Origin: Perkinsela sp. CCAP 1560/9
Lineage: Eukaryota; Protista; Euglenozoa: Kinetoplastea
Reading direction: 5' to 3'
Assembly: GCA_965644495.1 (NCBI GenBank)
Contig: CBFFSA010000035.1
Coordinates: 1-64,000, forward strand
DNA: 64,000 bases
How positions within the stretch are numbered: position 1 is the first letter of the stretch; each line of letters opens with the position of its first letter. Below are positions 6,874 to 46,931 of this stretch, piece by piece. Made by a program: the position numbers and the translations under genes. Under the pieces are notes generated by a model. That model saw only the letters and a program-made list of their open reading frames with translations, was not told the DNA's origin and searched no databases.

Positions 6874-7129
6874 AGTGTGTTTCCGGAATAATAAGAGGGT
6901 TGAAACCTATGAAAGGTAAAGCCTGGCAAAACCAGCATATTCCTCATTCACGTGGCGAAGAAAAGTACTTTGTTAAAAATAGTGAAGAACATACTTGGTC
7001 TCCATCGTGCGCTGCAAAATATTTTCGCGCTACAAAAAATGAAGATTTTGAAAAAACTATTTTTCGAAATAAACCCCCAGAAAGGGTAGCCGAGGTCTTG
7101 GCGCACATTTTCCACCTCCGTACTCGGGG

Positions 7130-7460: not shown

Positions 7461-7464
7461 TTGG

Positions 7465-7837: not shown

Positions 7838-8382
7838 GGAAAACAGTAATATAATAGAAGAAAAATATGTAAAAGGGGCTCCGGTGGTCCAAGAATTTTC
7901 AAAAAAAAATTGGACCCTTGGGGGGTCCAGGGTGGGTCCAGGGGTGCATACCGCACGAAATTTTTGTGAAAAAAATATTTTTCGAAAAAAAAAGCGCAGA
8001 AGGGGTAGCCGGAGTCTTGGCGCGTATTTTCCCCCCTACCCGGGGATGGACACTTTAATATCAAAATTTCCAGCTTAAACCGTGTTCCGGGTTATTGTGC
8101 CCCGCCTGCACAATAACTGGCTCTAGGCACAATACGTGGCTCTTGGCACAATAAGTAAATATTGGAAAAACCCAAAAAAGGGTAAAAAAATTAGGCGTCG
8201 CTTCGCGGCGCCTTTTTTATGGACAAACATGTTCATATGCAGAGTTAGTTCTATTTATTTCCATAAATTTCCTTTCTAATTATTTTCTTAAATTTTAAGG
8301 AATGCGTTGTTGAACAAAGTCAATTCCGAGAAAATGGGAATAGAACCTACCAAAAAAATATGGCGCCGCTTCGCGGGAAAAG

Positions 8383-9232: not shown

Positions 9233-9664
9233 GGAGCACATATACTGTTGAAACAAATATTCTTTATACAGGGGTGAACAGAAATTTTGCCCCCCCGCGG
9301 AAATTTGATTTTTTTTATCCGTTTTTGCTCATCTTTGCAGCATCGGAGAGATCTCGCTTTCCTAGCGAAGGGCTTTGCCGCCTTTTTTCGTAGGGACCCC
9401 CTGAGACCCCCTAGGTCCAAAAAACATGGTTTTTTGATACCGTTTTTCTGGAACGCACCCATTCTTTTACATTTTTTTTATGTTTTATGAAATCGTTTCC
9501 TTCGCATTTTAGCTCGTTTTAATCGCGTTTGATGAATCTCGTTCTCATAGCGAATAGTCTTGCTGGATTTCTTTCTTAATGGCTCCTTAGAGCTCTCATG
9601 GGATAAAAGTATAATTTATGACCTTGGGGCATAAAAGACATTTTATGAGTTGCAATTAGGGATG

Positions 9665-10963: not shown

Positions 10964-11419
10964 TGCATACGTGGACGTTAATTACCTGAATCACTTTTGT
11001 GGTTTGGGTTGGAAGGAAACTTATGAGTACGACTAACGATAATTAGTCGCCTTCTTTTCGTTTACCTTCTCCGGCTTTACGGTGGCACCGGGCCTAACTT
11101 CGTATCCCTATACTTTTTGATTATCATGCAGTAAACTGCAGAGATACCTGCCCTAGGAGTGGTAATACAAAGCGGTGAGCCGTGCCGCGCTGAGACAAGA
11201 TTACGCCATGGAACACGCGTAGAATATATTAGATTGATCACAAATAAATTTAGACGTCGGAGTGAAGTACATGAATTTGCATGTCATTTTCGTTTCGGTA
11301 CATCTTTCTGTCACACGTAGGCACACCAATTTTCCAAAAAATGGAAGTGTTTGTCAAAGTACCTAGATACGCGTTTCTATGCACGTATACTAGAAACAAG
11401 CATAAGGATTCGGTTATTA

Positions 11420-13191: not shown

Positions 13192-13220
13192 TCAGACAAT
13201 TCAATCCCTTGTACGTATTC

Positions 13221-14120
13221 TTAATATCTTACTATCACTTCATACAAACTGGTGCAAACATGTAGAAACATGTACAGACTGTCAGGGCAAACATACCCAA
13301 AGTTCTCCGGTAACTCCCTAATAAAATGCAGTACCCACATATCGGCCAGCATTTTATAATTCTCCGCCTTTTCTCTACTACTGGAAATTGCTTGTCCATG
13401 GGGGTGCTCAATATATTCTGCAGCCACCTTTCCCCATCTACCATCCTTTAGCAAGCTTGCCCTTTCTCTGAGCAATACAAGATTGCCCCCTGACACCATG
13501 TTGTAATTCTCTAGGCGGAGGCAGGTAAGCCCCCGTTGAAAGCTGGTGGAAACCTTCGGATTCTTCTCGTTTCCGATATCCTGTTCCGCCATTTCCAAAG
13601 CCAATTTTCTGTTAGATTTCCGTTCGACTTCACGAGCAGCTTTGTCACGTTGTAAAGCTGCAATAAGCGAATCGGTAACAGGTTTAGAAGTGTAACCGGG
13701 CGCGGACGATACCTTAGCACGAGGAACGCTATTCTCTCCTACAACCGGAGCTTGATCATATGACACCGACACATCCGGAGGACTAATCCCATGACCAACT
13801 GTTGACATCCTACATCGTGGCACGGCTACCACTGAATTCAGAGAGTCTGTCTCTGCACAATCTACCTGTTCCAAACCATTAATAATTTCAATTTTCCGAA
13901 TGCGCTCTTTAAGAAGACGATTTTCCTCTTGCTCCTTGCGCAGCGCATCTTGTATCTTAGATTTTTCGACTCCTTTTAAGGATCCGTTCATTTCGTCTTT
14001 AGAGTTTCTATTACCTTTCTTTTTAATTCCTTTGCTGGAAATGTTTTCATCCTTTCCACGCTTTGCGCGCTCTACGCGTTGCGCCTTTGAAAGAGTCATA
14101 TGAAAGTCAGTTCCGACCAA
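13221..14120 (-). CDS. ORF1 (gag-like/coiled-coil) of the ITR retroelement; ATG at 14100
   Basis: A 299-codon frame immediately inside the ITR and upstream of RT, with a basic N-terminus and a coiled-coil-like stretch. Confidence 0.6.
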   Translation of the reverse strand: MVGTDFHMTLSKAQRVERAKRGKDENISSKGIKKKGNRNSKDEMNGSLKGVEKSKIQDALRKEQEENRLLKERIRKIEIINGLEQVDCAETDSLNSVVAVPRCRMSTVGHGISPPDVSVSYDQAPVVGENSVPRAKVSSAPGYTSKPVTDSLIAALQRDKAAREVERKSNRKLALEMAEQDIGNEKNPKVSTSFQRGLTCLRLENYNMVSGGNLVLLRERASLLKDGRWGKVAAEYIEHPHGQAISSSREKAENYKMLADMWVLHFIRELPENFGYVCPDSLYMFLHVCTSLYEVIVRY

Positions 14121-14213
14121 AACACAAAAAACGAAAAGAATGCGACTAATTATCGTTAGTCGTACTCATAAGTTTCCTTCCAACCCAAACCACAAAAGTG
14201 ATTCAGGTAATTA

Positions 14214-14560
14214 TAGGCTCTTCGTTAAACGCGGTGGTTGTTTTCAACTTAGAAGTCACTCATGCTGCGCGCTTCGCGTTGAAAACTACCACCGCGTTTA
14301 ACCAAGAGCCTAAAAAAGAAAAAATCGCCAAAAGATCATGAATAATCTAGTTTTTTGGGTGAAAAAAACCGATTTTAAGGCGAAAATTGCGAAATTTTAA
14401 CCCGAATTTGGGCCGTTTTTGATGCCTTACCAGTAGGGGCAGGAGGCGAATTTGTCGAAAGAAACGTCGCAGAATGGTAGCTGGGCTCCAAAACTCTTAA
14501 AATACGTTAGGAGTCGATTTTGGAAAAATAAAATTTTTACTATTTTTTGGGTCAACTTGT
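14214..14560 (+). repeat. Dispersed repeat copy 2, beginning with a ~100-bp hairpin (14214-14312)
   Basis: TAGGCTCTTCGTTAAACGCGGTGG...CCACCGCGTTTAACCAAGAGCCTA forms the hairpin. The remainder matches 7130-7460. Confidence 0.8.
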
Positions 14561-14843
14561 TTTTTGGTCACCCTAAAAATTTCGGAAATTTTGACCTTGT
14601 CGGACCCCTCCTTCGCGTACCAGGGGGGGGGTACCCCCAGGTGGGGGTGAAAAATTATCGCCGCGGCCTACTCTACCACTTCCCTGCGCTCGATTTTTTA
14701 TTTTTGGACTTGGCATCACGATTTGTGACCCGAAGCATTCGGCCCACGGCGTCGGATCAAAAGGGTATACCCTTATTGTTGGAGGGAGGAGCAAATTACC
14801 TATTGCATAAATAGCGTGTAAATTCTTTCGGCTGGAGGAACGA

Positions 14844-15671
14844 TTAGCTTTCCGCATCCCAGTTTAAATCTTCCCAGTTTCTGTACAGGGAATTTACAAC
14901 GCTTGATGTAGAATTTAATACTTCTGGCGTTGTTCTCAAAATCTCCCAAGTTTTATCGTTCCGAGAAGTTTCCTGTTCGAGCCCCCGAGATATGGGGTCC
15001 GCTGCGTTACTCATCCCCGGCACCCATTTTATGTCAAGATCCACAGTTTCACTTTCCCTCAACTCCCATATGTTTTTAAGAATTTTTAGTGCGTTTCTTG
15101 AATTGCTGTATCCATTGCGCACAGCCGCACGAGCAGGTTCGCAATCAGTCGCAATGATTATGGCATCAAGTTTGGGGGTATCGGGAGGCACATTTCGAAT
15201 TCCCTCTTCAATAGCCATCAGTTCTAAAACGAACGCGGGAAGATCTCTCTCTATTTCAGAGTTCTCCTGGAACCAAACTCCGTACGTAGAGCCGTCAGGG
15301 CGGAAGTAGAGACCCCCCCTTCCGAATTTTTGGCTTGCATCCACAGCAGCATAAACGACGTTTCCAGTACGGAAAATTCTGGGGGTTTCATTCCAAGCCC
15401 TATTCATGGACGAGAGGAAGATGTTCGGCTTCTCTTCATGCCATTGGTTGAGGGGGATACCGCACAATTCTGAGTCCCAGCCGTGGATGCGAGCCTCACG
15501 TGCACATTGTGCTAACAAAATTAAAGCAGAAACCGCACGATACAAAGGTCGGCGCGCAATTCGCAGTTCATAACAATCTCGAAATCCAACCCACCGCCTC
15601 TCGAATTGTTGGAATTTGCGCCGTATTTCGCAAAGTACCATGGGGTATTTTCCGCCATCCGGGTGACACAC
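14844..15671 (-). pseudogene. RNase H (DIRS/VIPER-type) fragment of a second retroelement
   Basis: AAVDAS, LELMAI, IATDCE and KWVPGMSNAADPISR. No RT is seen upstream. Confidence 0.8.
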
Positions 15672-16642
15672 TCCGTAAATTCCGTAAAGAACGCGTCGAT
15701 GAAGTCATAGCAACTTTCCTTACGCGAATAGGGAGTGAAAAACAAACTACAAGGTGACAATTGTAATTTTTCTATACACATATTAATCACATATTAATAG
15801 ATCATAATAAAATATTATTATGTGCCCCGTAGGGCCACACATACCCTCTATAATATAGAAAATCTGCAAATCCTCTTCAAACAATTCTTTTCGTGAACTA
15901 TAAACACTTCTTTTGAAGTGAAAAAACACAACACACTCCAAAGATTATGCTGAATGACACCCACCCTAGTTCCTTAGTATCTTGTTATATCCGGTACCGG
16001 GCGGTGTCATTCTCACGCTGCAATGTATGTTTTCCATACATGATCGGGTGAACGGCACCCAAAACACAGCATTCCCGGTCTTCGGTATGACGCAGGCGCG
16101 CGAGCTGGTGTGACGTGCGGAGTAAAATAACGCTGCGATGCTTGAGGTACATACGTGGCGTATCTTATAAAAATGGTGTTCTTATATAAAGTCCATATCT
16201 CATCATAAGGTACAGAAAGCCTTCAACATTAGAAGGACGATCTGTTTGCTGCAACTCGCAGCCTTTGACTACTCACCTTCACACTTCTTTCCAACTTCCC
16301 TAATACTGCCGCTCTGCACGTCTTCTTGGAGAGCCTCCATTTTTATCCTCCCAGTCTTAAAAAGCGTAAGGAGAAATTGAACCTGGTGGATCGACAGCCC
16401 GAGCTGAAAGGGAGTTTTGGGCGCTCTAGAGTTATCGCTCCATCTGGGAACATTTTTCACACGCACGCAATAGACGTTTATCGTAGCAGGGGGCTTCAAG
16501 AGCTTCGGTTGCGTGAGGGAGGGATGCAGAAACATTTGATGAATCTCAGCAAGGCCCGAGCTGAAAAAGATTTTTGGCTCTCTAGAGACCCACTGATTCC
16601 TCATCCGTACAACTGAACCCTTCGATTCCTGTGTGAACAAGC

Positions 16643-17326
16643 TTGCCCGGCACTTTCGAAGAATACCAGCAAAACCCGAGGAGCATTCTGATGAAGGGCT
16701 ATGAGGTGACCGTTCAGGCTGTCTGGGGACATATTGGCGAAGCTCATCGCGAGACTGTACTGGGCAACATATCTCTTAAGGAGGATGGTTCCGGCGATCT
16801 GGAGGCTAAGTGGGCGGATGAACCTGGAATGGCGTATGACTTCCCGTTTCCCGAGATTCATTACTATGAACTTCATATCATCTCTGTCCGTGCACGGATG
16901 CCGGGAGGACGTAGAGTTGAAGATGCAGAGAAAATTTCAATTGCTCCTATCACGGATCCAGCCAAATTTACTTCGTATGACGCATTGACTTGGGGACCGT
17001 GGTTAGAGTCGGTAGATGAGCTTCGGGTACGTGATTTGATTCGGGATTTACGCACCGCGCCGGAATTCGGGCTTCTTTTGAATCCACCGCCGATCCGTGA
17101 ACGTTTATTTAAGATGATCATCGAATGGATCAATGCGGCGCGAGTCTATCCGCAGTGGCGCGAGGAACATTTCTTAGCTATCGTCCGGACTGCGATCGAG
17201 GAGCTCAGGAACAATTATTGGAATGCTGCGGGAATCCCTATTGAGAACCTTCAGTTGAAGCTTCATAAAGAGGCCGAAGGGAAAGATGCATACTCCACGG
17301 GCGCGGCCTTTTTTTCTCTCTCCTAG
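16643..17326 (+). CDS. Hypothetical retroelement ORF1/gag-like protein, probably 3'-truncated
   Basis: A 227-codon frame with natural composition, lying between retroelement remnants. Its N-terminal beta-rich stretch loosely resembles a segment of ORF 21683-24262. Confidence 0.45.
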   Translation: MPGTFEEYQQNPRSILMKGYEVTVQAVWGHIGEAHRETVLGNISLKEDGSGDLEAKWADEPGMAYDFPFPEIHYYELHIISVRARMPGGRRVEDAEKISIAPITDPAKFTSYDALTWGPWLESVDELRVRDLIRDLRTAPEFGLLLNPPPIRERLFKMIIEWINAARVYPQWREEHFLAIVRTAIEELRNNYWNAAGIPIENLQLKLHKEAEGKDAYSTGAAFFSLS

Positions 17327-17383
17327 GCTGATGTTGCCATTTGTTCAACCGTTTTTTTGCAATTAATAAGGGGGGAGAAGTAT

Positions 17384-18760
17384 GAATCGCGGCATTGCCT
17401 CTATATTTTGACCCAGTAGACGAACCAAGTAGGTCCATTGGGGGGGGTATACGAGTTGAAAACAAGCAATCAAATTAGCAATTTGAAAATTTAGCTTTTT
17501 TTTTTTTACTAAAAACTAGCAAACAATTCTACCCGAAATCCACCCCTAATCAAATCACTCCCGCACCAAAACTAAGACCCGTGACGGCACGTCGGTTAGT
17601 GACTTGGTACCCCCCCTTGCCCCCCCCCCCCCTTTCGCAGAGAAACACCCTCCCCCCCCCCTGCGGCTGTTAAATGATTGGGGGGGACGAATTACTCATC
17701 GTTCCCATATCCAAGGAGGGCCGTGTCAGGGACCGCCGCGGGAAGTCGGAGTACCAGCATCCGAGCCTGTGTCCGCATCAGAGTGATGTTAAGTGACGTC
17801 ACCAATTGGTGTAAGGCTTCCCCGTTCGAAAGGGTACCCCCGGAGTATGCCGCACGAGAGACGGAAACCTCCTTGAGGATCGCAAAGGCGCTTGGACTCC
17901 ACGCTCCATAAGATTCCACGACCATCGCTCCAAATCGATGGCGTGCAAACTCTGCTTCCTCTCTTTGCTTCTTTTTGTTTTCGGTGGCGTATCGTTCCGC
18001 AAAAGACCCCGCCGTCACCCAGTTAGCATCACGGACTAAGTCCGTATACTTTGGTTGCTGAACATGAGTGACGGCGAAGTCTAATACAAGAGACTGGCTT
18101 AGCCCGATTGTAGGGATGGACACGTCTCCGGGCCTGGTGAGGGCGCCCCCAGGACCCTTGTTGCCCAGACTCACTTCTCTCCGCGGGGTGAAACCGGCCT
18201 TTTTACATTCAGAAGTAAACTGTGCCGCTAGTGCGTTGTGGCGTGCGATTATACCATGCCCGCTTTTGCACCCCAGAGCGTGGTCACCCTCGGGATCTAG
18301 CGGTAGCGTGCATTTTTCCATAGGACAAGGCCGGGACGCTGGATAGATCGGGTCCCCTAGCCACCAGCGTGTGAGGGTGCGAAACTCCGTCGGTGTGAAA
18401 GCCAGACCGGTTTTCTTGGAGGGGATCACAAAAGCCCATTCTGAGGCTCCTTCTCCTGTTTCTGATATCCATCTGGCCCGTGTGCGAAGGTCAGCTTTCG
18501 CAAATGCCTCGTGAAATTCCTGGTTGGCGATGGCGTGGCTAAGGTCGCGTTGTCGGGGAATCACCAGTTCAGTTCCGGATTCTTGCGCGTCGGTATACGG
18601 AGAATCAGTCGCCAAAGCCATACTTTTCGGAATTTTGCCGCCTTGTTGGACCACCGTCTTTCCGGCACGCCTGTTCACCTCCCGCACGGCATGGTCAAAG
18701 CCCTCAGCGTCCGCTGGGTCCCAACGGTCTTTGTCCGTTGAGAAAGCTACGGAGGCAACG
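17384..18760 (-). mobile_element. 5'-truncated CRE-like non-LTR retrotransposon (family of 25642-29836)
   Basis: ORF 17692-18687 has CPMEKC..HALGC, RHN, RREVSLG, RPGDV..LDFAV and VVESYG. The last ~100 nt of its 3' UTR match 29719-29824. Confidence 0.9.
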
Positions 18761-19022
18761 TAATAATAATATAATAATATACCACTTAGTTCTTAAAAGT
18801 GGTTAGGAATCTTTCTGCCATGACTTTGAATGCTACTTTCTTTCTCTTATTCTTTGGACTGACGCAAATGCCTTTTGCAGCATTTTCCAATCGTTGAAAA
18901 GGGCGGAGCGTTGAAAGACCAAAAATATGCTTCGCTATGTTCTCTCTTGAAGGGGAATTAAACGCATTTTTTAGGTCTATTGATAAGATGCATGCCCCCG
19001 TTCTGTAGCGTTCATTTAATGT

Positions 19023-19766
19023 GTGAATGATACGTTCGCACCCAGCCTTCGGAAATTCACCTTAGCAGTAATGCCCCGCCTGGGAATGGGCCATCCACGT
19101 CTTCCCGAATCTCTCACCTGCCCCGGATGCAGAGTTCTTCTAAACAGTGCCACTGCCCTTACACATATTCCGGGTTGCGTCCGATGTGCGGGAATGAATA
19201 CAACGGTAAAGCACAACGCACTAGTACGCTATATTCATAATATGTGTCTGCGTGCGGGTATTCCTTGTGAGTTAGAGCCACGGCAATTCTCCACATATGT
19301 GTGCACATCATGCTCCGAGGTGATCCGAGAAGAACGTCGGCGAGAGCACATTGCGACATGCAAAGGCAACACGCTACACCGTTCAGGTCCCGATTTGGTT
19401 ATTTATTGGGCGACAGGTGAAATCTTCTATGATCTCACCGTCGTACACGATCTGGCACCATCTCTTGCGGGAACAACACCGGCGAAGGCAATCAAAGATG
19501 CGATCGCGCGGAAAAACACCAAATACGTCTCATCGAATATGTTCGCCGAGGAGCAATTCGCCTGTTTACCGGTGCTGTCAAGTGGCTCATTGCACGCCCG
19601 AACTCGGGAGCTGCTACGGCTTCTGGCGGAAAAGATTTCTATTGAGCCCAGCAAGGTGGAAAACGATTTCATACTTCTCTTGCAGGAGATGAATGGAAAC
19701 ATTCTCCTAGGCCAGCTCAGAAAGTACCTGAGCCAAAGCCATGGGGACGATATTTGCGCTTTTTGA
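19023..19766 (+). pseudogene. 3' fragment (zinc finger plus REL endonuclease) of a CRE-like element (family of 21631-25641)
   Basis: MPRLG, CPGC..HIPGC, KHN, EPR and SGPDLVIYW..FYDLTV are colinear with ORF 24272-25480. Confidence 0.9.
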
Positions 19767-19997
19767 TGGAATATGCAGTGAGAATCCGTGGTAGGAAGTC
19801 TCATAGTTTACGAAAAGAATTGTTTGAAGAGGATTCGCAGTTTATATCATACAATTATTAAGACAACGTTTAAAAAATAATAATTCTGAAATGGCATAGT
19901 GTATTTTTTTTGCTTCCAAATAAAATTTTGTTGGGTGTAAAAAAGCTTGTGAATTTTTCCGCGAAAATCAGACATCGAATGCACCTCCACACGAGAA

Positions 19998-20203
19998 CTT
20001 TTGTTAAGACCCTTTCTTTTGTTAAGACCCTTTCTTTTGTTAAGACCCTTTCTTTTGCTAAGACCCTTTCTTTTGTTAAGACCCTTTCTTTTGTTAAGAC
20101 CCTTTCTTTTGTTAAGACCCTTTCTTTTGTTAAGACCCTTTCTTTTGTTAAGACCCTTTCTTTTGTTAAGACCCTTTCTTTTGTTAAGACCCTTTCTTTT
20201 GTT
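19998..20203 (+). repeat. 18-bp satellite tract, ~11 units
   Basis: (TTTTGTTAAGACCCTTTC)n. Confidence 0.98.
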
Positions 20204-20425
20204 GTCGCAACATATGTGGACTCCAATTTAATTCCGCGCGAGCAATTCGTATGCCTACCGCTTTTGACAGGTGGTGCCATGAACAAGAGCACTATAAATT
20301 TCCTCCATAGCCTCGTGGATGCAAACGGATTCGAACGCCGTCATATTCTTGAGGACTTCAAGTTGCTTCTTCAAGAATTGAACGGAGCTCTCCTGGCTTC
20401 GCAACTGCGAAAGACAATGCAATAA
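20204..20425 (+). pseudogene. Extreme 3' coding fragment of another CRE-like element
   Basis: TYVDSNLIPREQFVCLPLLTGG...FKLLLQELNG..SQLRK matches the C-termini of 19023-19766 and 24272-25480. Confidence 0.85.
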
Positions 20426-20621
20426 AACAGGTCATCTCATATTACAAGATGTTATTATTACAAGATTTTATCATTACAATCTTTTAAAAAACCCGTTCAC
20501 TTAGTATCATCTACAAACAATATAGTTTTTGATTTTCTCAGTAGGAAAGGGATTCAAGGTAGGCGTTCTCGACACTATTGACTCACAGGCTCTTTCTTGT
20601 AGAATACCCCGTTGGATTGGC

Positions 20622-20680
20622 TCTTTTGTTAAGACCCTTTCTTTTGTTAAGACCCTTTCTTTTGTTAAGACCCCTTCTTT
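20622..20680 (+). repeat. 18-bp satellite tract, ~3 units
   Basis: Same unit as the main array. Confidence 0.95.
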
Positions 20681-21479
20681 AACGATAAAGTCTTTAACGA
20701 TAAAGATACAGTTTCTGTACCTTGTTGGTTTTTTTTCCCTACTAAGTTTTAGACCTTCATGTGTCCGGGGCGGCATTGACCCAAGCGAGAAGTTGGGAGG
20801 GTGAGGTTCATGTCTTCTCTGCACCTGTTGCATGAATTGTCGAAACGCGCTTCGCTTAAAGGAACAAGGGGTCCAGGAACACTGAAGCAAAAGCGGTGGA
20901 ACTCTCGAGCGCCAAAAATCTTTTTCAGCTCGGGTTTTGCTGGTATTCTTCGAAAGTGCCGGGCAAGCTTGTTCACACAGGAATCGAAGGGTTCAGTTGT
21001 ACGGATGAGGAATCAGTGGGTCTCTAGAGAGCCAAAAATCTTTTTCAGCTCGGGCCTTGCTGAGATTCATCAAATGTTTCTGCATCCCTCCCTCACGCAA
21101 CCGAAGCTCTTGAAGCCCCCTGCTACGATAAACGTCTATTGCGTGCGTGTGAAAAATGTTCCCAGATGGAGCGATACCTCTAGAGCGCCCAAAACTCCCT
21201 TTTAGCTCGGGCTGTCGATCCCCCAGGTTCAATTTCTCCTTACGCTTTTTAAGACTGAGAGGATAAAAATGGAGGCTCTCCAAGAAGACGTGCAGAGCGG
21301 CAGTATTAGGGAAGTTGGAAAGAAGTGTGAAGGTGAGTAGTCAAAGGCTGCGAGTTGCAGCAAACAGATCGTCCTTCTAATGTTGAAGGCTTGAAAGTAG
21401 TAGTGCTTGATATGCTTTTTATACAATATTAAAGATATCTACCATATGTGCAACTCGTAAGCATTCATACAAAAAAAAA
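20676..21479 (+). pseudogene. Processed RNA retrocopy: SL (20691-20727, preceded by a 15-nt partial SL) through poly(A) (21471-21479)
   Basis: SL at the 5' end, A9 tail, and satellite on both sides. 20929-21392 is an inverted near-identical copy of 16217-16680. Confidence 0.8.
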
Positions 21480-21630
21480 CTTTTGTTAAGACCCTTTCTT
21501 TTGTTAAGCCCCTTTCTTTTGTTAAGACCCTTTCTTTTGTTAAGCCCCTTTCTTTTGTTAAGACCCTTTCTTTTGTTAAGACCCTTTCTTTTGTTAAGAC
21601 CCTTTCTTTTGTTAAGACCCTTTCTTTTGT
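21480..21630 (+). repeat. 18-bp satellite tract, ~8 units
   Basis: Same unit. Starts directly after the poly(A). Confidence 0.98.
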
Positions 21631-24600
21631 CTCGTCAGAAGAACCCTCGATCCGGACCCGAGATGCCCCATCCGGACCCCAGGTGCCCCCTCCGTCGCCG
21701 TTAGCACAGCTACCAACGCCCCTTCATCCGCCACAGAACCCAAAGAAGAAAGTTTTCATCTTCCCGTCATACAGCCCACCCTCGTCACCGCATCCTCCAG
21801 CGCCGCAGTCAATGCCAGTATCACCGAGTAAATCTCGCACGCGACGAGTCAAGATCATTGGACCCTCATGTGACATTTCAGCGACGGACTTCCACCGAAT
21901 GCGCAAAGTGCAAGACGATCGTAGCAAACAAAGATCACCCCCCAAAGCACCAGTACTAAAACAGCATCTGCCGATTCCGAACAGTAAGACACGCAAGGAT
22001 ATAAATGAGCCAGAAGCGTGGAGCAGTAGATTAAGGAAAACGTGTGTCACGGCGGCGAATGCCATCTCAACAGCGACGAATGTCATGTCCGAAGCCATAT
22101 TCAATTCTGAAAAAGCATCGGAACACCATGACATTGCACCGACCCCCCTAGCGTTCGATACGCCATCTGATTCCTCGACTTCCGAGAGTTCAACAAACGG
22201 CAGCACGGAAATTGCGAATGGAAAGGATGATAGCAATGATACGGGGCAGACGGAAAGCCCAGGGCGTGTAAGAGGGGAGGTGTCTTTCTTTGAGTGCGAG
22301 GATACGGCCGGGAACATGAGCGAGGATATGACAGAGAACATGGGCGGAGACGCACAAAACGCTCATCGTATTGCGGAACGCAGCGCCGTTCTGTTCGTAG
22401 GCAGCGGCGTCGAACAAGCACGGGACAGAGCTCTAAATCTCATGCAAAACACGAAGCCCATATCCCAGTTCCCTTTGCCCCCTGAAGAGATATGGCTAAA
22501 GTCGAACATGGTGAAAAAGGGAACTGCATGTACGGTAGCGTGGACTTGGGACCGACAAGTAACGCTCAACGTGTCTCTTGGGAAGGTAACTAAAACTTAT
22601 AAGCGCGGAGGGAAAGGGAAGCTGAACATAACCTACAATGGCTTACACGGACACAAAACAGGAGAGGAGTTCAGCGGATCCCTGCCACCGCAGGAAAACG
22701 TTCGCGTGTACCAAGTTTTGTGGCATTGCGCACCACCTCCTATCGACTATGCTTCACCAGAAAATGCAACTCAAGAGTGTATTTCAATGGGAGAAGCCAC
22801 ACGTGCACCGGAAGAGGACGTCGATCACCTACCGATACCAACCGCCCGAAACTTCTCACCAGACTTCATTCCATGCGTGCTCGCCACCTATCGTGACATA
22901 ATTAGTACATATGGGAAAAGCGATTATCCTGTGAGGAACAAGATTTGGAATCAAATGATGTCTGCGATGAAATTGTCCCTTGCAACTGTAAGACTTGCGA
23001 ATGGGAGACGACGAAGGAGAACGCCCATAAATTCACAAAAAGCCGAAGGAGAGGACAGAACGGATGCAGACCTTGATAGCTCGACGGGCGACAGACGAGC
23101 GATCGAAAAGGCGATACGGCTAGTCCTGGAAGGGTGTACTTCCAAAGCGACTAAGGTGCTTGATCAACCCTTTCGACGACTAGAGCTTTCTGACGAACAA
23201 GTGTTGGAAAAGTTGCAGGCACTGCACCCGAAAAACGAATATAAAATTCATCTTCCGGAAGCAGCCCCAATAATCGCTGGTATCTCGGTGGAGGAGCTGA
23301 GGGCAGCTGGGCGACGGCTCAGCAAAGGCGTGAGCCCAGGTCCCACGGGAACGACGGATAGCGTTCTTCGACTTCTTCTCGACGATGAAGTGTGTTGCTT
23401 GAACCTTTGCCACATGATCACCGACTTAATAAACGGTTTTGTATCTCGTGAAGTACTACAACGCCTAAACAGGGCCCGACTAATTGCCATACCAAAAGCG
23501 GACGGGGGAGTTCGTCCAGTTGCGATGGGCGAAGTGTTTGGAAAGCTAGCCGGCATAGTCTTGTTCCAAAGGTACGAAAACGCGCTTGAGCCGCTATTCG
23601 CCCCTATGCAACAAGGTATTATGGCAAAGGCAGGTTGCGAAAAAATTGTCCACACGCTGCACGAACGATACTGCGAAGGTCAGTCGATCCTCTCGGTTGA
23701 TCTAAAAAATGCTTTCAACTCACCGTCACGGGCCGACATCGCGAAACATGTATTTGGACTCTCAACTCATCAGCCCTTTCAACGTTTCTTCCTAGCCGAG
23801 TATGCTGAAGCCTCTGAATTGCTGTTTTATGGAAGTGAGGGCACGCTCGCAGGAAAAGTTCTTAGCGAAGCCGGAGTACGACAAGGTTCGCCACTTTCGA
23901 CGCTGTATTTTTGTGCATATCTCCAACCGATCCTCGAAACCCTGGCAGCTGAACATCCAGAGATCGAAATCCATGCATACATAGACGACATCAATCTCAC
24001 GTCACATACGCCTTCCGAGATAGCAAAAGCGTTTGAACGCCTGAAAGCATTACTGGCAGAGAGCAGCATTGAGCTCTCCGCTCAGAAATGTGTATGGTTC
24101 GGCGGACTGCAAGGTACAGAGATGCCAACAAGCTTGAAGGAAGTGGGGGTCCGGAATGAAGAAGATGCGACCAAAATTCTTGGAGCGTTTATAGGGAAGG
24201 AGGAAACGATAAGTGAGAAGTTACTACAGCGAGTCGACAAACACAAGGACATATTCAGATGACTGAAATCGATGTGCATGAGCAACGCATCGCTTATAAT
24301 CCTGTCGAAGTGTGTCAATGTACGACAGCAATTTCACATGAGAGTGCACAGCCCAGCGGCCACCGAAAAATGCGCACAGCTCTTCGACCATCAAGTGGAA
24401 GAAGTCCTAGAAACCTGGTTGGGTAAATTGCAAAAACAACAGATGGACATCGCACGTCTACCAATTAAGAAGGGAGGGTTGGGTCTCACGTCATGCTACC
24501 ACACGCGAGAAGCAGCATACAATGCGTCCAGACACGCGGCTCTGAAGCAAAGAAAATCCTTTTCAGCTCGAGCCACGTCAACGGAAGCCAGGTGCACCGA

Positions 24601-25641
24601 CAGCGTAAATTCAGTTCAGAAAAATACGTCACCCCCCCCTACAGACGAACTCGCCACAGCTGCGAAACTCCACGAACATGCCTGGAACAAACTCTTTAAC
24701 GATCCAGAAATAGCACCAATCCTGAGGGCCACTACCACCAAAGGGAGTTACGACTGGCTTATGTCACATACGAGATATATTCCACCCCACGTTTTTGAAT
24801 TAGCCATAATGCCGAGATTGGGGATAGAACATCCGCGCCTGCCGAAAAGCTTGCTATGCCCAGGATGCCGTTCCATACTCGACAACAGATCAGCTCTCAC
24901 TCACATCAGTGGATGTGCGCAATGCTCTGGTATCAATGCCTCCGTGAAGCACAACATGCTGGTGAAATTCTTGCACGACCTTTGCATGCGCGCAGGGATA
25001 CCATGTGAGAGTGAACCTCGAGCATTCAGTAACTGGACGTGCACTACGTGTAGGAATGTGGTAAGCCGAGAAAGCCAACCTACGCACAGCAAAATATGTA
25101 CAGGACGGCACCTTCATCGATCTGGGCCAGACCTTGTGATATACTGGGACACAGGAGCTATATTTTATGATCTTACCGTCGTGCACGAGATGACACCTTC
25201 CCACATAAATAAGAAAAGCTCTCAATTGATCCGTGACGTCATTCATCGCAAAATGGAAACTTACGTCGCAACGGGAATGATCGCCCAAGAATCGTTCCAA
25301 TGCATTCCGATTCTGTCCTCCGGATCACTACACGCGAACACACGCAATCTGATCAGAGCCTTGGCAGACGCTTGTCTTCTGAACGCCCGCGAGAGGGAAC
25401 TCTCGTTCAAGCTACTGTTGCAAAACTTAAACGGCCTCGTGGTACACTCCCAACTTCGGGAGCACCTCGAAGACAAGTAATAGATTTTAGAAATATTCTA
25501 TAATGGTGAAATAGCTGAGAGATAATATCCGTTGACATCTAAATATTATATATTTTCTATTTTATGCGGAGATAGTTTCTCTTCGAAAATTGAGAGAAGG
25601 GGGGAAGGAGCACATTTCTCATTTTCCTACAAAAAAAAAAA
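21631..25641 (+). mobile_element. Full-length CRE-like non-LTR retrotransposon A (RT plus restriction-like endonuclease)
   Basis: Begins at the satellite junction and ends in A11 (25631-25641). One long RT/REL reading frame. Confidence 0.9.
21683..25480 (+). pseudogene. RT-zinc finger-REL polyprotein with one in-frame TGA (24260-24262)
   Basis: GVRPVAMGE, VDLKNAFNS, GVRQGSPLS, YIDDI, LPIKKGGLG, CPGC..H..C, KHN and GPD..YD. ORFs 21683-24262 and 24272-25480 share a frame. Confidence 0.9.
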
Positions 25642-25675
25642 TTAACGATAAAGATACAGTTTCTGTACCTTGTTG
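25642..25675 (+). other. Spliced-leader-like sequence (34 of 39 nt) at the 5' end of retrotransposon B
   Basis: TTAACGATAAAGATACAGTTTCTGTACCTTGTTG contains the kinetoplastid SL core GATACAGTTTCTGTAC..TTG. It is not followed by a GT donor. Confidence 0.85.
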
Positions 25676-25717
25676 AATTAATTTTTCTTTCTCTCTATTG
25701 CTTACTAGGGTCGCACC

Positions 25718-28700
25718 ATGCCGCCCGACGATTCCTTTGATGCCAACGCGTTACCAATGGATGATGACTCTTTTCGCCAGGAACAAATGTCACACAAACC
25801 CGGAGATTGGGACCAATTCGCAGGAAACGCTCACCTGATTTCCGGCCAAAGCACCTACAATGAACTTTTGTATACGACACCTATCCCCGAAAACGTACCT
25901 AAACACTGGACCGAAAGAGCCTACAAGATCGCGGCAGAGGAACCTACACCGGACACAGGCAGAATGACCGCGGACGAAGAGACAAATCACTCCCTTGTCG
26001 TGGCAAACAACGTGGGAATTACTTCGGAGGCCTCATCCGCCCACATTTTCTCTCCAACTAAGGCTACAAAGCGCAAGAATACTGATTCTGCCCCTACCAC
26101 ATACCACAACGCCAATACGCAGCAGAAGGATGTAGAACGTCAATGCCCAGCAGAAGGATGTACGTGGAAAACCCCACCACATAGCGGAAAATGGCAGGCA
26201 TTTTATCACCATGTAGCTCATCGACACGGCAAAAACATTCCAAACGAGTGGTGGGAGGGAGAGGGAAGATTCCTCTGCAGAGAGTGTGGCAGACACTACG
26301 CCAAGAACAAGCTCAAGTCTCTCTCACCCCAAAAACTGCAGGGGCCGCAACAATTCCGGACGGTCATTAGCCCCACCAACGGCACGTCCCCAAAACGCAG
26401 AAGAAAATCCAACAGACAATTTGCCATCACTCGGCTCCATCTGCGCACTTCCCATGAACACCTGCAAAGACGTTCCACACTGTTGCAGATTCCTCTGGGC
26501 GAGCATCCTCACGCAATCCTTGACATCCGCAGTGAAGGAAAACACGGTAGAGGCATGGACACTTCTCGCAATGCTCCCTAAGTGTGTCCTACCAGCACCT
26601 TTCCGAGGCGGTCGCAAAGGCCACACATCATACTCTACGTACGTCGAAAACCGCATGAAACTGTGGCTAGCGGGGGAGTACCTCTTGCTATGGGAAGATG
26701 CCCAGAGGGATCATTATAAAAAGCGCTCCAGATCACGCGACTCCGAAATCGATGCAGACAGAGCGGCAATTCGAGCCGAACTCTTGGCCCGCCAGGGGGA
26801 ATTTTCCAGGGGAATGGCAGCCCTAACCGCAGCCCCCATGGCGCCAGACAATGCAGATACCCTCGAAAAGCTCTTGGAGAAGCATCCAGACCCACACGAA
26901 AATCCCTTGCAGAATGATCTACCACCGATCGAGGGCAACCCCCTACACCTAGAGGAAACAGAGGTCAAAAAAGCGATCGTCAGCTTCCGCAGGGGATCTT
27001 CAGCCGGCACGATGGGCCTTCGTCCAGAGCACCTCCAGGCAGCCATCTTGGAACATGTGGACAAGGATGTGAATCCTCTCTCGGCCCTCACGCGACTAGT
27101 GAACCACATGCTTCAAGGAAAAGCGCCACAAGACGTCCAATCATTCTACGCTGGAGCCCGGCTCTGCGCCCTGGAAAAAGGCGAGGACGATGTTCGACCA
27201 ATCGCAGCGGGTGAAACCCTTAGACGCCTCGTAAGCAAGGCGGCATGTATCTCGATAAAGGAGAAAGCGGGTACTCTGTTCAACGGGCGACAATATGGTG
27301 TAGCAGCCCCCGCGGGAGCCGAACGAGTTATCCACCTCTGCCGGAGAGCCATGCTCAATAACCTGGGGAGTGACAATTTTGTCTTCTGCAAAGTGGACTT
27401 AAGAAACGCTTTCAATAACGTCAGCAGGCCTGTTCTCACCCTAACCACGCGCTTAAATTTCCCTGAACTCTCACCTTGGGTAGAGTGGTGTTACTCCAAC
27501 GTGAGCTGTCTTGCCTACAGAGACAATGTCATACCCTCGGCGGAGGGGGTACAACAAGGAGACCCACTAGGCCCTCTTCTCTTCTCTCTAGTACTATCCA
27601 GTGTAACAGAAGAAATATCGTCTCGGTCGAATCTAGACACTCAACTTTGGTACCTAGATGACGGGGTACTCATAGGGGAGGCTGAGGAGGTCAGGAAGGC
27701 GCTCGATGTTTTTTCCAATGTTGGCTCCCGATGCGGACTTTTCCTAAACCCATCGAAATGTGAGATAATAACACCGCCTTCTTCATCCCATCTCACAGGA
27801 TTATTTCCAGAGATACCGAAGACTAAAACTCGTACTGATGGAAATTTCGACATCTTGGGCTCCCCGATTGGGTCAGCGGAGCATTGCGTGGAGTTTCTCA
27901 GGTCAGAAGCCATTGAGCCCGCACGCGAAACACTAGACGCAATAGGTTTCATAGGAGACCCACAAGTAGCCATGTCCCTCATCCGGCAGTGCACTGGATT
28001 CTGTCAAATGGTCTACGCACTTCGCACGACACCCCCTCAGGCGCTTTCTGAGCTTTGTAATTCCCTTGATGAAAATGTTCTAAAAGCCGCGGAATGGACA
28101 CTTTTCCCTCTGGATTCCCACGCGCGTGACCAAATCCAACGTAAGAAGCGCAACGGGGGTTTTGGTCTCAGGTCTTCGCTCCTCCACGCAACAGCAGCAT
28201 ATGTCTCCTCCGTTGCGCACGCCGCCGATGCAGACGATTGGGACCCTTCAGAAGCCGAGGGATTCACCATTTCCGTGCAAGACGTGAATAGAAAGGCGGG
28301 GGTAGAACTTGTGGATCCCGGTACAGGACGCATCCCGAAACAGAATAAACCACATCCAGAGCCCAGCCAAAGACACAACCTCACCTCGAGAAGCAAACGC
28401 CCACGACACATACTCAACAACTTGGACGCGGATAAGACGGCCGAGCCGGAGATGGTTATCCCCCGGCAGCAGCAACTGAGCCAAGCCATATCGCAGCAGG
28501 AATTCACTACAGCCTACGGCCAGGCCGACCCCCGCACCCGAGCACGATGGGTTTCTCAGTCAGGAAAGGGAGCTGGGAGCTGGGCCTTCGTCACGCCCTC
28601 AAGGAGTAAAGGTTTTGCTTTCACACCAACCGAGTTCCGCACGTTATCGCGCTGGTGGTTCGGCATGGACATTTATGGCCAAGACCGCCCCTGCCCAGCA

Positions 28701-29308
28701 AACGGGTGTTCCCTACCCCTACAGAAAAATGGGGAGCATGCATTATTGTGCAAGAACGGACATGGCCTCATCACGCGGCACAATGCGCTTTGTGTAGAAT
28801 TCGCCTCCTTTTGCAGCAAGGCCAACATGGCTCCCCAGCGAGAAAAAAGTCTAGGAAATCGGGGGCCAGGAGGGGGTCTCACCAGACCGGCTGACGTTTT
28901 CCTCCCCACGTACACTCTAGGGAAAGGCATGGTACTAGACTTCGCAGTCACCCACGCACAGCAAACAAAGTATTTGGACTCTGTCCGGAATGCTAGCTGG
29001 GTGGCTGCAGGGGCTTTCGCCGAGCATTACTCAGAAACGAAGGAAAAACAACGTCAAGAAGCAGAAGAAGCACAACTAGGGTTCACGGCCATGGTTGTCG
29101 AGTCTTTTGGCTCCTGGAGTAAAAGCGCAATGGCGGTCTTATGGAAGGTGGGAGCACTACGCGCCAACTCGTCAAAAGGTCTTCTCACGGATGCTCCCGA
29201 AATGACCTTCTGAAAGAGCTTAACGTCACACTCATGCGCTCTCAGGCCCGCATGATGGTCTCCCGGATAGTCGTCAGTGACCCCCAAGATCCCCTGGAAG
29301 GGGAGTAG
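25718..29308 (+). pseudogene. LsmAD-like motif, zinc fingers, RT and REL polyprotein with frameshifts near 26310 and 29190
   Basis: WDQF..STYNELLYTT, CPAEGC..H...H, CREC, DVRPIAAGE, KVDLRNAFN, GVQQGDPLGP, WYLDDG, RHN and RPADV..LDFAV. The C-terminus continues in another frame (LNVTLMRSQARM) to the stop at 29308. Confidence 0.9.
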
Positions 29309-29836
29309 GGCCCACAGGCATGGTCCTCTAGGGTAACAAGACGATTAGGGTGCTGGTCGCGTCGACAGAGTCTATACTCACGCCTAGCCCGCGAGGGCTA
29401 GGTACCCCAAGTGAGGTAGTACACGGGCAGTGAATCTCCTCCCCGTCGGCCAGCATCCTGTTTCGCGACCGTGTCGCTGTCGACACAGGCCCGCACCTGC
29501 GCCCTCCCGTAAACAAGGGAAGGGTTCACAAGTCAGGCCGTGGAGTGGTCGAAAGACCCGGTCCGGAACGCGCGAATGGATTGGGTCTGGATTGCTTGTT
29601 TTTATTTTTACTGTGTCTTGTTTGTCATATATACTTAGGGGAGATTGAATTGCTAGTTTTGGGCTAAGAAAAAAGAAAAAAAAAGAAAAAGAAAATATAC
29701 TTCTGTGGAAATAAAAAGAATTGCTAATTTGATTGCTTGTTTTGAATTCATATACCCCCCCAATGGACCTCCTATGTACTTGGTTCGTCTACTGGGTCAA
29801 AATAGAGGGGCAATGCCGCGATTCAAAAAAAAAAAA

Positions 29837-32800
29837 TCTTTTGTTAAGACCCTTTCTTTTGTTAAGACCCTTTCTTTTGTTAAGCCCCTTTCTTTTGTTA
29901 AGCCCCTTTCTTTTGTTAAGCCCCTTTCTTTTGTTAAGCCCCTTTCTTTTGTTAAGCCCCTTTCTTTTGTTAAGCCCCTTTCTTTTGTTAAGCCCCTTTC
30001 TTTTGTTAAGCCCCTTTCTTTTGTTAAGCCCCTTTCTTTTGTTAAGACCCTTTCTTTTGTTAAGACCCTTTCTTTTGTTAAGACCCTTTCTTTTGTTAAG
30101 ACCCTTTCTTTTGTTAAGACCCTTTCTTTTGTTAAGCCCCTTTCTTTTGTTAAGACCCTTTCTTTTGTTAAGACCCTTTCTTTTGTTAAGACTCTTTCTT
30201 TTGTTAAGACCCTTTCTTTTGTTAAGACCCTTTCTTTTGTTAAGACCCTTTCTTTTGTTAAGACCTTTTCTTTTGTTAAGACCCTTTCTTTTGTTAAGAC
30301 CCTTTGTTTTGTTAAGACCTTTTCTTTTGTTAAGACCCTTTCTTTTGTTAAGACCCTTTCTTTTCTTAAGCCCCTTTCTTTTGTTAAGACCCTTCCTTTT
30401 GTTAAGACCCTTTCTTTTGTTAAGCCCCTTTCTTTTGTTAAGCCCCTTTCTTTTGTTAAGCCCCTTTCTTTTGTTAAGCCCCTTTCTTTTGTTAAGACCC
30501 TTTCTTTTGTTAAGACCCTTTCTTTTGTTAAGACTCTTTCTTTTGTTAAGCCCCTTTCTTTTGTTAAGACCCTTTCTTTTGTTAAGACCCTTTCTTTTGT
30601 TAAGACCCTTTCTTTTGTTAAGACCCTTTCTTTTGTTAAGACCCTTTCTTTTGTTAAGACCCTTTCTTTTGTTAAGACCCTTTCTTTTGTTAAGACCCTT
30701 TCTTTTGTTAAGACTCTTTCTTTTGTTAAGACCCTTTCTTTTGTTAAGACCCTTTCTTTTGTTAAGACCCTTTCTTTTGTTAAGACCTTTTCTTTTGTTA
30801 AGACCCTTTATTTTGTTAAGACCCTTTGTTTTGTTAAGACCTTTTCTTTTGTTAAGACCCTTTCTTTTGTTAAGACCCTTTCTTTTGTTAAGCCCCTTTC
30901 TTTTGTTAAGACCCTTCCTTTTGTTAAGACCCTTTCTTTTGTTAAGCCCCTTTCTTTTGTTAAGCCCCTTTCTTTTGTTAAGCCCCTTTCTTTTGTTAAG
31001 CCCCTTTCTTTTGTTAAGCCCCTTTCTTTTGTTAAGACCCTTTCTTTTGTTAAGACTCTTTCTTTTGTTAAGCCCCTTTCTTTTGTTAAGACCCTTTCTT
31101 TTGTTAAGACCCTTTCTTTTGTTAAGACCCTTTCTTTTGTTAAGACCCTTTCTTTTGTTAAGACCCTTTCTTTTGTTAAGACCCTTTCTTTTGTTAAGAC
31201 CCTTTCTTTTGTTAAGACCCTTTCTTTTGTTAAGACCCTTTCTTTTGTTAAGACCCTTTCTTTTGTTAAGACCCTTTCTTTTATTAAGACCCTTTCTTTT
31301 GTTAAGACCCTTTCTTTTGTTAAGCCCCTTTCTTTTGTTAAGACCCTTTCTTTTGTTAAGCCCCTTTCTTTTGTTAAGACCCTTTCTTTTGTTAAGACCC
31401 TTTCTTTTGTTAAGCCCCTTTCTTTTGTTAAGACCCTTTCTTTTGTTAAGACCCTTTCTTTTGTTAAGCCCCTTTCTTTTGTTAAGACCCTTTCTTTTGT
31501 TAAGACCCTTTCTTTTGTTAAGACCCTTTCTTTTGTTAAGACCCTTTCTTTTGTTAAGACCCTTTCTTTTGTTAAGACCCTTTCTTTTGTTAAAACCCTT
31601 TCTTTTGTTAAGACCCTTTCTTTTGTTAAGACGCTTTCTTTTGTTAAGACCCTTTCTTTTGTTAAGACCCTTTCTTTTGTTAAGACCCTTTCTTTTGTTA
31701 AGCCCCTTTCTTTTGTTAAGACCCTTTCTTTTGTTAAGACCCTTTCTTTTGTTAAGACCCTTTCTTTTGTTAAGACCCTTTCTTTTGTTAAGACCCTTTC
31801 TTTTGTTAAGACCCTTTCTTTTGTTAAAACCCTTTCTTTTGTTAAGCCCCTTTCTTTTGTTAAGCCCCTTTCTTTTGTTAAGCCCCTTTCTTTTGTTAAG
31901 ACCCTTTCTTTTGTTAAGCCCCTTTCTTTTGTTAAGACCCTTTCTTTTGTTAAGCCCCTTTCTTTTGTTAAGACCCTTTCTCTTGTTAAGACCCTTTCTT
32001 TTGTTAAGACCCTTTCTTTTGTTAAGACCCTTTCTTTTGTTAAGACCCTTCCTTTTGTTAAGACCCTTTCTTTTGTTAAGACCCTTTCTTTTGTTAAGAC
32101 CCTTTCTTTTGTTAAGACCCTTTCTTTTGTTAAGCCCCTTTCTTTTGTTAAGACCCTTTCTTTTGTTAAGACCCTTTCTTTTGTTAAGACCCTTTCTTTT
32201 GTTAAGACCCTTTCTTTTGTTAAGACCCTTTCTTTTGTTAAAACCCTTTCTTTTGTTAAGCCCCTTTCTTTTGTTAAGACCCTTTCTTTTGTTAAAACCC
32301 TTTCTTTTGTTAAGCCCCTTTCTTTTGTTAAGCCCCTTTCTTTTGTTAAGACCCTTTCTTTTGTTAAGACCCTTTCTTTTGTTAAGCCCCTTTCTTTTGT
32401 TAAGACCCTTTCTTTTGTTAAGAACCTTTCTTTTGTTAAGACCCTTTCTTTTGTTAAGACCCTTTCTTTTGTTAAGACCCTTTCTTTTGTTAAGACCCTT
32501 TCTTTTGTTAAGACCTTTTCTTTTGTTAAGACCCTTTCTTTTGTTAAGACCCTTTCTTTTGTTAAGCCCCTTTCTTTTGTTAAGACCCTTTCTTTTGTTA
32601 AGCCCCTTTCTTTTGTTAAGCCCCTTTCTTTTGTTAAGACCCTTTCTTTTGTTAAGCCCCTTTCTTTTGTTAAGACCCTTTCTTTTGTTAAGACCCTTTC
32701 TTTTGTTAAGACCCTTTCTTTTGTTAAGCCCCTTTCTTTTGTTAAGACCCTTTCTTTTGTTAAGACCCTTTCTTTTGTTAAGACCCTTTCTTTTGTTAAG

Positions 32801-46908: not shown

Positions 46909-46931
46909 GAAAGGTAAAAAAAGTAAATAAT

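Follow-up and report, generated by a model that had tools for sequence, protein, structure and literature searches.

Introduction

The retrotransposons CRE1/CRE2, SLACS and CZAR sit inside the spliced leader (SL) exon of SL RNA genes, and TRAS and SART, which rely on an apurinic/apyrimidinic (AP) endonuclease, have nearly all of their copies in the telomere repeat. Chimeras that arise by template switching are also known: the R2 reverse transcriptase (RT) jumps end to end between templates in vitro, and U6-L1 chimeras occur in mammals. Among the retrotransposons without long terminal repeats (non-LTR), those with a restriction-like endonuclease (RLE) make up the clades CRE, R2, R4, NeSL and HERO; spliced leader exons are a known target class of these elements, and the HERO clade and the microsatellite-preferring RLE families are largely non-specific, with some preference for simple repeats (PMC4640811). 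The retroposition of trans-spliced mRNA has been described in dinoflagellates, whose retrogenes carry relic spliced leaders and include copies that start with the SL (PMC5585692, PMC12014239). Here, we describe a 64,000-nucleotide stretch of Perkinsela sp. CCAP 1560/9 DNA (positions 1-64000 of contig C35, hereafter the window, in a genome of 21 Mb and 110 contigs) in which two retrotransposons, called A and B, and several smaller inserts lie between tracts of an 18-bp satellite.

The find is an ordinary transposon nest at the edge of a satellite, with one instructive chimeric insertion. With moderate confidence, we interpret the locus as the old left edge of a large 18-bp array that received at least four separate insertions by target-primed reverse transcription (TPRT), namely the inserts A2, insert 1, X and A+B, with the satellite serving as an occasional and not a dedicated target.

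Structure and Enzyme Type of Elements A and B

Element A occupies positions 21631..25641 of the plus strand and comprises an RT open reading frame (ORF) at 21683-24262, an endonuclease ORF at 24272-25480 and a closing run of eleven A (25631-25641); no SL stands at its 5' end, and the copy is probably 5'-truncated. The RT ORF is divided from the endonuclease ORF, which lies in the same frame, by an in-frame TGA at 24260-24262 that is also present in a contig of this locus from the European Nucleotide Archive (ENA), and which could be either a mutation or a stop that is read through. Element B follows on the same strand (25642..29836) and consists of an SL exon copy (25642-25675), a 5' untranslated region (UTR), two overlapping ORFs (ORF1 at 25718-26581 and an RT-endonuclease ORF at 26286-29213), a 3' UTR and twelve A (29825-29836). 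Comparison with the true SL RNA gene showed that the head of B is the SL exon minus its first 4 bases, fused directly to the poly(A) of A.

A Pfam scan identified the RVT_1 domain in both elements (E values of 9.5e-23 for A and 1e-17 for B) as the sole domain in their long ORFs; no AP-endonuclease domain was found, a negative result of Pfam alone. The RT of B gave sequence matches to R2 RT structures, and the translation of its C-terminus reads CCHC, RHN, RPAD and D-x-A-V-T motifs. When this C-terminus was aligned with those of ten A-like sequences from the window and other loci (11 sequences in total), the motifs CCHC (C-P-G-C...H...C), E-P-R, S-G-P-D and Y-D-x-T-V-V-H proved invariant in the ten, and the RLE motifs were conserved in all 11. 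All ten also carry an extra C-x2-C...H...C (C2HC) finger, located between E-P-R and S-G-P-D (25013-25175 in the window), which is absent from B.

An AlphaFold model of the C-terminal domain of A (predicted local distance difference test, pLDDT, of 85) was compared with the PDB using Foldseek; the top seven hits were R2 proteins (including 9dou, 9nl3 and 8gh6; best E value 1.7e-6), with cap-snatching nucleases next. This likeness to R2 emerged by fold search only, as phmmer of the C-terminal ORF of A against PDB sequences returned nothing relevant. Searches for relatives of A were uninformative about names: a word-indexed search yielded three proteins, an exhaustive search yielded unnamed proteins for which ten cluster look-ups gave no informative names, and an Atlas look-up returned only unnamed RVT_1 clusters, below 0.9. 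On the basis of the RVT_1 domains, the R2 matches, the RLE motifs and the fold match of A, both elements are non-LTR retrotransposons that combine an RT with an R2-type RLE, the fold of the A domain being a predicted one. This bears out the sequence-only reading, which had taken the inserts for retrotransposons with a restriction-like endonuclease. The features of the R2 superfamily that were looked for are found at the locus: an RT, a C-terminal CCHC motif and PD-(D/E)xK nuclease downstream of it, and TPRT footprints.

Satellite Tracts, Junctions and Flank Overlaps

The 18-bp satellite unit, TCTTTTGTTAAGACCCTT, forms four tracts in the window, as delimited by Tandem Repeats Finder and, in agreement with it, by our own scan. 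Tract 1 (19998..20203, 11.4 units) begins with CTTTTGTTAAG and ends with ...TCTTTTGTT. Tract 2 (20622..20680, 3.3 units) ends in TCTTT (20676-20680), a microhomology common to it and the 5' end of the SL, while tract 3 (21480..21630, 8.4 units) ends in TCTTTTGT (21623-21630). The main array starts with the same TCTTTTGT (29837-29844) and fills the remainder of the window (29837-64000, ~34 kb); variant matches extend it to at least ~74.3 kb of the contig, an inverted stretch starts near 79.06 kb, and the whole array amounts to roughly 49 kb. Across the genome, the satellite totals ~75 kb, or roughly 0.36% of 21 Mb (3536 exact 21-mers). The interior of the main array within the window holds one insert only, a DNA transposon at 46407-47467, and no retroelement was found there.

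Each of the four right-hand junctions, where an insert gives way to satellite, was read directly from the sequence. At 19998, ...GAGAA is followed by CTTTTGTTAAG; at 20622, ...TTGGC is followed by TCTTTTGTTAAG; at 21480, nine A (21471-21479) are followed by CTTTTGTTAAG; and at 29837, twelve A (29825-29836) are followed by TCTTTTGTTAAG. The satellite thus resumes with CTTTTG, TCTTTTG, CTTTTG and TCTTTTG, respectively, so that all four junctions fall within one base of one another in the 18-mer and two of them directly follow poly(A). The shared phase (T)CTTTTGTTAAG that the sequence-only reading had described is therefore real, as is the co-orientation of the inserts, since the C-terminal ORF of A2, a fragment of the A-like family C in insert 1, X, A and B all lie on the plus strand. 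Genome-wide, 11 tract starts could be read: five fall on two of the 18 positions (binomial P ~0.004) and eight inside a 6-base stretch (P ~0.009), both of these tests being post hoc.

The flanks of the inserts overlap by 9 bp at insert 1 (TCTTTTGTT), by 8 bp at A+B (TCTTTTGT) and by 4 bp at X, whose 5' junction shares TCTTT with the SL. Elsewhere, a short poly(A) element in a satellite patch on contig C1 shows an 8-bp overlap (CTTTCTTT), and an insert in an ENA contig (L096) shows one of 6-8 bp, depending on a one-base deletion. Three of these five overlaps are thus 8 or 9 bp long (P ~0.01 under a uniform spread over 18, by our own arithmetic). A 225-bp element beside the C1 tract was considered as the body of a satellite-headed element and rejected: it has at least 27 copies, and the five that can be checked against the listed satellite sites have no satellite in front, for which reason we treat it as an insertion with an 8-bp duplication.

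In the window, the marks of TPRT are the poly(A) at three 3' ends, the 5' truncations and the flank overlaps. Regular overlaps of 8-9 bp are what staggered cuts in an existing array are expected to leave, and they argue for real, independent insertions. The proposal that the inserts entered an existing array by TPRT is supported; the bottom-strand nick at ...AACAAAAG(A) that came with it is supported within the window and fails as a unique register, since two other events use CTTTCTTTTG. An 8538-bp ENA contig (ERZ24900291 ctg2219l) matches window positions 20989-29525 at 99.99% identity and carries the junctions between the X poly(A) and tract 3, between tract 3 and A, and between the A poly(A) and B, whereas the junctions at 19998, 20204, 20622 and 29837 come from a single source, this assembly.

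Elements A and B as a Probable Single Insertion

Taken alone, A is flanked by a 1-base overlap and B by none, whereas A and B together are flanked by a clean 8-bp duplication, the two copies of TCTTTTGT lying on either side of the block at 21623-21630 and 29837-29844, as the sequence-only reading had noted. A+B is therefore best read, from these flanks, as a single chimeric insertion. Reverse transcription would have started on the trans-spliced mRNA of B at the satellite nick and run to within four bases of the capped 5' end of the SL; cap-adjacent bases at the first four positions of the kinetoplastid SL are heavily modified. The RT would next have taken up the poly(A) tail of an A transcript as its template, and the chimeric cDNA would have been joined upstream, with a single 8-bp duplication left to enclose the two elements.

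The poly(A)-SL joins are explained most simply by template switching, in which the RT, on reaching the end of an RNA, moves to the tail of another within one TPRT event. A point that weighs against it is that the sequential insertion of A exactly at the 5' end of B, with a blunt cut, would yield the same structure. As a clean example of a two-RNA chimera, A+B is relevant to how the head-to-tail retrocopy chains of this genome form.

Genome-Wide Distribution of the Element Families

The last 300 bases of B, used as a query against the genome, gave 43 matches, from which 30 loci were reduced to ~15 distinct 3' ends. One of these (the window copy) adjoins satellite, five run into the very start of an SL copy at the head of another element, three to five run into 5'-truncated B copies, and the remainder run into unrelated DNA. 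Element A has at least eight further copies (98-99% identity), none of which runs into the SL and 5' UTR of B after its poly(A), and none of the contigs that hold them appears among the poly(A)-to-satellite junctions of the genome. The other A-like 3' ends (~11 in the sampled loci) adjoin unrelated DNA in ~8 cases, SL in three and satellite in none.

A repeat-specific element would have the large majority of its copies in the target repeat, which is true neither of B, nor of A, nor of the other A-like ends. The sequence-only reading had cast the array as a dedicated landing pad, and had named beforehand, as the outcome that would speak against this, a tabulation in which most poly(A)-tailed copies are flanked by unrelated DNA or SL sequence. 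This is what the survey returned, with satellite at 1 of ~15 ends for B, none of at least eight for A and none of ~11 for the other A-like elements, and the dedicated landing pad therefore fails.

The use of the satellite itself also varies. In the orientation seen in the window, there are four independent poly(A)-to-satellite junctions in the genome: two in the window, one on contig C1, where the event has been multiplied by local duplication, and one on contig C44. The C1 and C44 junctions lie at a different phase, CTTTCTTTTG. On the opposite strand, runs of at least 12 A meet satellite at two further phases (two poly(A)-like junction types), and on contig C27 an RLE element adjoins satellite in the opposite orientation. 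Genome-wide, the insertions thus use no fewer than three positions of the T-rich strand and three of its complement, compared with one position and one orientation within the window. The same scan found no poly(A)-to-satellite site in the window orientation within either of the two large arrays (on C35 and, at ~681-714 kb, on contig C4); in the other orientation, two sites of one junction type lie inside the C4 array only.

Two repeated structures were encountered during this survey. On C27 (2349-21698), a 3.9-kb higher-order tandem repeat, of which five units were read, contains ~465 bp of satellite together with the RLE element and a 5'-truncated SL-headed copy, both opposite to the arrangement in the window. 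On contigs C62 and C30, a 2.28-kb unit made up of an SL, a body, a B-family 3' UTR, poly(A) and the filler GACCTC occurs in at least 14 tandem repeats with identical junctions; this array is an amplification by duplication rather than by repeated insertion.

Spliced Leader Copies and Retrocopy Chains

The spliced leader of this genome is of kinetoplastid type. Two apparently true SL RNA genes lie at C1:661316-661644, 297 bp apart, with the exon AACTTTAACG...TTG followed by the intron GTATGAGAAGC. Many retrocopies begin with (A)TCTTTAACG, which has an extra T; this could stem from a variant form of the SL gene or from misreading beside the cap. A search with the 29-base SL core gave 485 matches, on both strands of the 21-Mb genome, and none of the papers searched contained the core string.

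Head-to-tail chains of retrocopies are the norm in this genome, since the poly(A) of another retroelement stands just upstream in 20 of the 31 distinct SL contexts among the sampled loci. Where poly(A) and SL meet, the poly(A) adjoins the very start of an SL copy that stands at the head of another retrocopy, and partial SL repeats occur at several of the joins. The CRE habit of inserting within the exon of SL RNA genes, at a fixed internal position, was not seen in the one true gene pair that was read, which is intact, and the inserts of the window lie in satellite.

Three further SL-related structures were noted. At several places on C1 (L061-L072), a dispersed family with ~128 pattern matches combines the 3' half of the SL, with a varying start, with GTACATTTT... 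and a strong CCGGAAACGGGCATA hairpin, and could be an SL-RNA-derived mobile element or a second type of SL RNA gene. On C44 (L029, minus strand, 1800-2290), very short pieces with poly(A) tails form a chain whose end is 35 bp of satellite with its own eleven A, which hints that a satellite-bearing RNA can itself be retrocopied. In the ENA contig ctg3930l (L095, 1030-1450), B-type poly(A) tails run into fragments of the beginning of the SL RNA intron (TGAGAAGC, then TTGTATGAGAAGCTTCG...); either an SL RNA gene was hit where its exon meets the intron, or RNA of the SL intron was copied.

Origin of the Shared Register

Under the reading that we favour, enzymes from two sources, the A-like elements and the abundant B family, would have nicked the satellite on its bottom strand, immediately 5' of (T)CTTTTG, and cut the top strand 8-9 bp further, after TCTTTTGT(T). 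The nuclease would be weakly specific, with few suitable sites per 18-mer and an apparent favour for cutting before (T)CTT(T), so that independent insertions could fall into the same register even if the enzyme does not recognise the satellite as a target. The A and B families would not be satellite-specific, most of their copies lying beside SL-headed or truncated retrocopies or in unrelated DNA, and the same machinery would copy other SL-capped, polyadenylated RNAs into the array, such as X. We further propose that inserts gather at the edge because the interior of the array would be young and homogenised by tandem duplication.

By our own count, 9 of the 10 readable 3' satellite junctions, on either strand, fall just before TCTT, GTCTT or CTTT; of the 36 positions in an 18-mer, no more than four or five are of this kind. 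One local register needs nothing beyond a weak preference, whether it lies in the nuclease or in DNA shape at the T-run. Several points weigh against this account. Among 55 poly(A) junctions outside SL and satellite, no base preference was detected, with only two starting (T)CT(C/T)TT, so that no general cut-site motif is shown, although many of the 55 may be RNA-to-RNA switches rather than target sites. Moreover, all four window junctions lie within one base of one phase, which is tighter than a loose preference predicts. The loci were sampled by way of B 3' ends, SL copies and satellite junctions and do not constitute a census, and the far end of the C35 array, the second large array (C4) and the flanks of other A copies were probed by pattern and BLAST tables only.

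One alternative places the true target at the 5' end of SL DNA copies, (T)CTTTAACG, with the two satellite strands carrying look-alikes (TCTTTTGTTAAG and TCTTAACAAAAG) and the chains growing by successive insertion. The commonest junction forms, poly(A) followed by TCTTTAACG or by CTTTAACG, mirror the satellite junctions at which poly(A) is followed by TCTTTTG or CTTTTG; opposite-strand junctions fall at (G)TCTTAAC. The SL sequence is also the target of CRE, SLACS and CZAR, as would suit this view. Spliced leader exons are listed among the targets of such elements (PMC4640811). However, the SL junction of A lacks a separate duplication, poly(A) is joined equally often to 5'-truncated copies without an SL, a point in favour of template switching, the single true pair of SL RNA genes that was read is uninterrupted, and the resemblance between the motifs is short, T-rich and was noticed post hoc. 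We consider this target unlikely, and the associated proposal that the endonucleases recognise a short site and cut before (T)CTT(T)...AA, common to SL-copy 5' ends and both strands of the 18-mer, is to be taken as similarly tentative. If it were true, each SL-headed insertion would supply a new target at its own front, so that chains would extend themselves, with the satellite as a secondary target that resembles the SL.

It is likewise unlikely that the tracts were written together with the inserts by multi-template reverse transcription, with a satellite RNA as one of the templates and the shared phase marking the 5' end of that RNA, where the enzyme would jump onto the next poly(A). Such an origin would parallel the junctions of poly(A) with SL in a genome where head-to-tail chains are the rule, and the C44 chain does hold a 35-bp satellite piece and a run of 11 A. 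It leaves unexplained, however, why the left-hand tract overshoots the starting phase of the right-hand one by 8-9 bases; no body of a long interspersed nuclear element (LINE) follows any of the five kinds of tract end that could be read, and the checkable copies of the 225-bp C1 element, as described above, lack satellite in front.

An improbable reading is that this lineage has the 18-mer as its specific recognition site, with a single position for the nick, which would make the array a dedicated landing pad like the telomere repeats of TRAS and SART. The common phase of the four window junctions and the consistent 8-9 bp overlaps would fit it, as would the presence of three A-like pieces (A2, the family C fragment and A) within 6 kb at the array edge, the two further poly(A)-tailed insertions of the same orientation elsewhere, and a satellite share of B 3' ends (1/15) that exceeds the 0.36% share of the genome, but with n=1. 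Against these stand the survey counts, the other phases and the other strand in use, the lack of retroelements in the array interior seen in the window, the scarcity of poly(A)-satellite sites within the large arrays, where none has the window orientation and the two in the C4 array are of one type, and the family C piece of insert 1, which is internal and does not have its own 3' end at the junction. This model is already largely refuted by the copy survey. Finally, an assembly artefact, in which inserts were wrongly joined into collapsed satellite, is extremely improbable: satellites are hard to assemble and four junctions are single-source, but the 8.5-kb ENA contig has three junctions at 99.99% identity and both the register and the duplications form a consistent picture.

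A striking local pattern can arise without target specificity: where the DNA is a short tandem repeat, a weak preference for certain cut sites suffices to put insertions in a single phase and orientation, with neat duplications. Because weak preference mimics targeting in this way, no array should be termed a landing pad until the copies of its elements have been surveyed. For annotation, the locus is a transposon nest at a satellite edge, with no new targeting system.

Other Inserts in the Window

To the left of A and B, the plus-strand insert A2 (19056..19997) is a 5'-truncated A-like element that retains a C-terminal endonuclease ORF and a 3' UTR, lacks poly(A) and adjoins tract 1 at 19998. 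Its ORF matches the C-terminal ORF of A over 19056-19736 (55% identity, BLASTP E value of 3e-95) and reaches a stop at 19766. Just upstream, a tblastn map places an inverted A-like RT fragment on the minus strand (18888-19061).

Insert 1 (20204..20621, plus strand) is a mosaic, flanked by TCTTTTGTT at 20195-20203 and 20622-20630. Its first ~274 bp, from 20204 to ~20477, are an internal piece of family C, and its remainder consists of three short dispersed pieces, the last of which is a 49-bp repeated terminus that finishes exactly at the junction. Family C was considered as a satellite-targeting element and rejected, as the window copy is an internal fragment, unlike 11 other copies that run into their own 3' UTR after ...ATCATTAC. 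The 3' UTR of the family C fragment (20440-20479) contains a 16-bp tandem repeat, TATTACAAGATGTTAT, whose TTAC(A/T)AAGAT core is loosely like the satellite (TTGTTAAGAC), a resemblance that may be coincidence.

Insert X (20681..21479, plus strand) comprises a partial SL repeat (20681-20690; the partial repeat that precedes the SL copy measures 15 bases), an SL copy (20691-20727), a body and nine A (21471-21479). Elsewhere, near-identical copies begin to match at the last SL bases and stop ~40-60 nt before the poly(A). The SL start, the nine-A end and the extent of these copies indicate that X is a processed copy of a trans-spliced RNA.

The left third of the window is a transposon island throughout. 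A Pfam scan of twelve ORFs in 1-20000 found no domain in 11; the exception, a minus-strand ORF at 805-1926, encodes a Tc1/mariner-type transposase with DDE_3 and Tc3-type helix-turn-helix (HTH) domains. A reversed B-like copy lies at 17383-18723. Inside the main array, the DNA transposon at 46407-47467 has terminal inverted repeats (TIR) and is flanked on both sides by CCCTTTCTT; on its minus strand, a short leader and an ORF come after a full SL copy.

Comparison with Known Systems

Like R2 and other RLE elements, A and B have an RT followed by a C-terminal CCHC motif and a PD-(D/E)xK-type nuclease, they bear the marks of TPRT, the predicted fold of A is nearest to R2 proteins, and no AP endonuclease was found by Pfam. 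Unlike R2 and its relatives, however, most copies here lie off any one target, the A-like elements have an extra C2HC finger inside the nuclease, and the copies are poly(A)-tailed, often with a 5' SL exon. With CRE1/CRE2, SLACS and CZAR, they share an SL-using host of euglenozoan type, an RLE-type enzyme and a frequent association with the SL. In contrast to those elements, the SL is here the element's own 5' end, copied from trans-spliced mRNA, and poly(A) meets the very start of the SL.

The analogy with TRAS and SART offered by the sequence-only reading is confined to local position and orientation: within the window, the inserts occupy a defined position in a short tandem repeat in one orientation, whereas most copies are elsewhere, off the repeat, and other phases and the other strand are used. 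The closest behavioural match is to the HERO clade and the microsatellite-preferring RLE families; the likeness is one of behaviour only, and the repeat here is an 18-mer satellite.

As in known template-switch chimeras, A+B would join two RNAs head-to-tail inside one pair of target duplications, although here the switch would have occurred four bases from the capped 5' end of the SL, and chains are very common in the genome. As in the dinoflagellate retrogenes, genomic copies start with the SL; the SL and the host are different, and the main templates here are the retrotransposons' own mRNAs.

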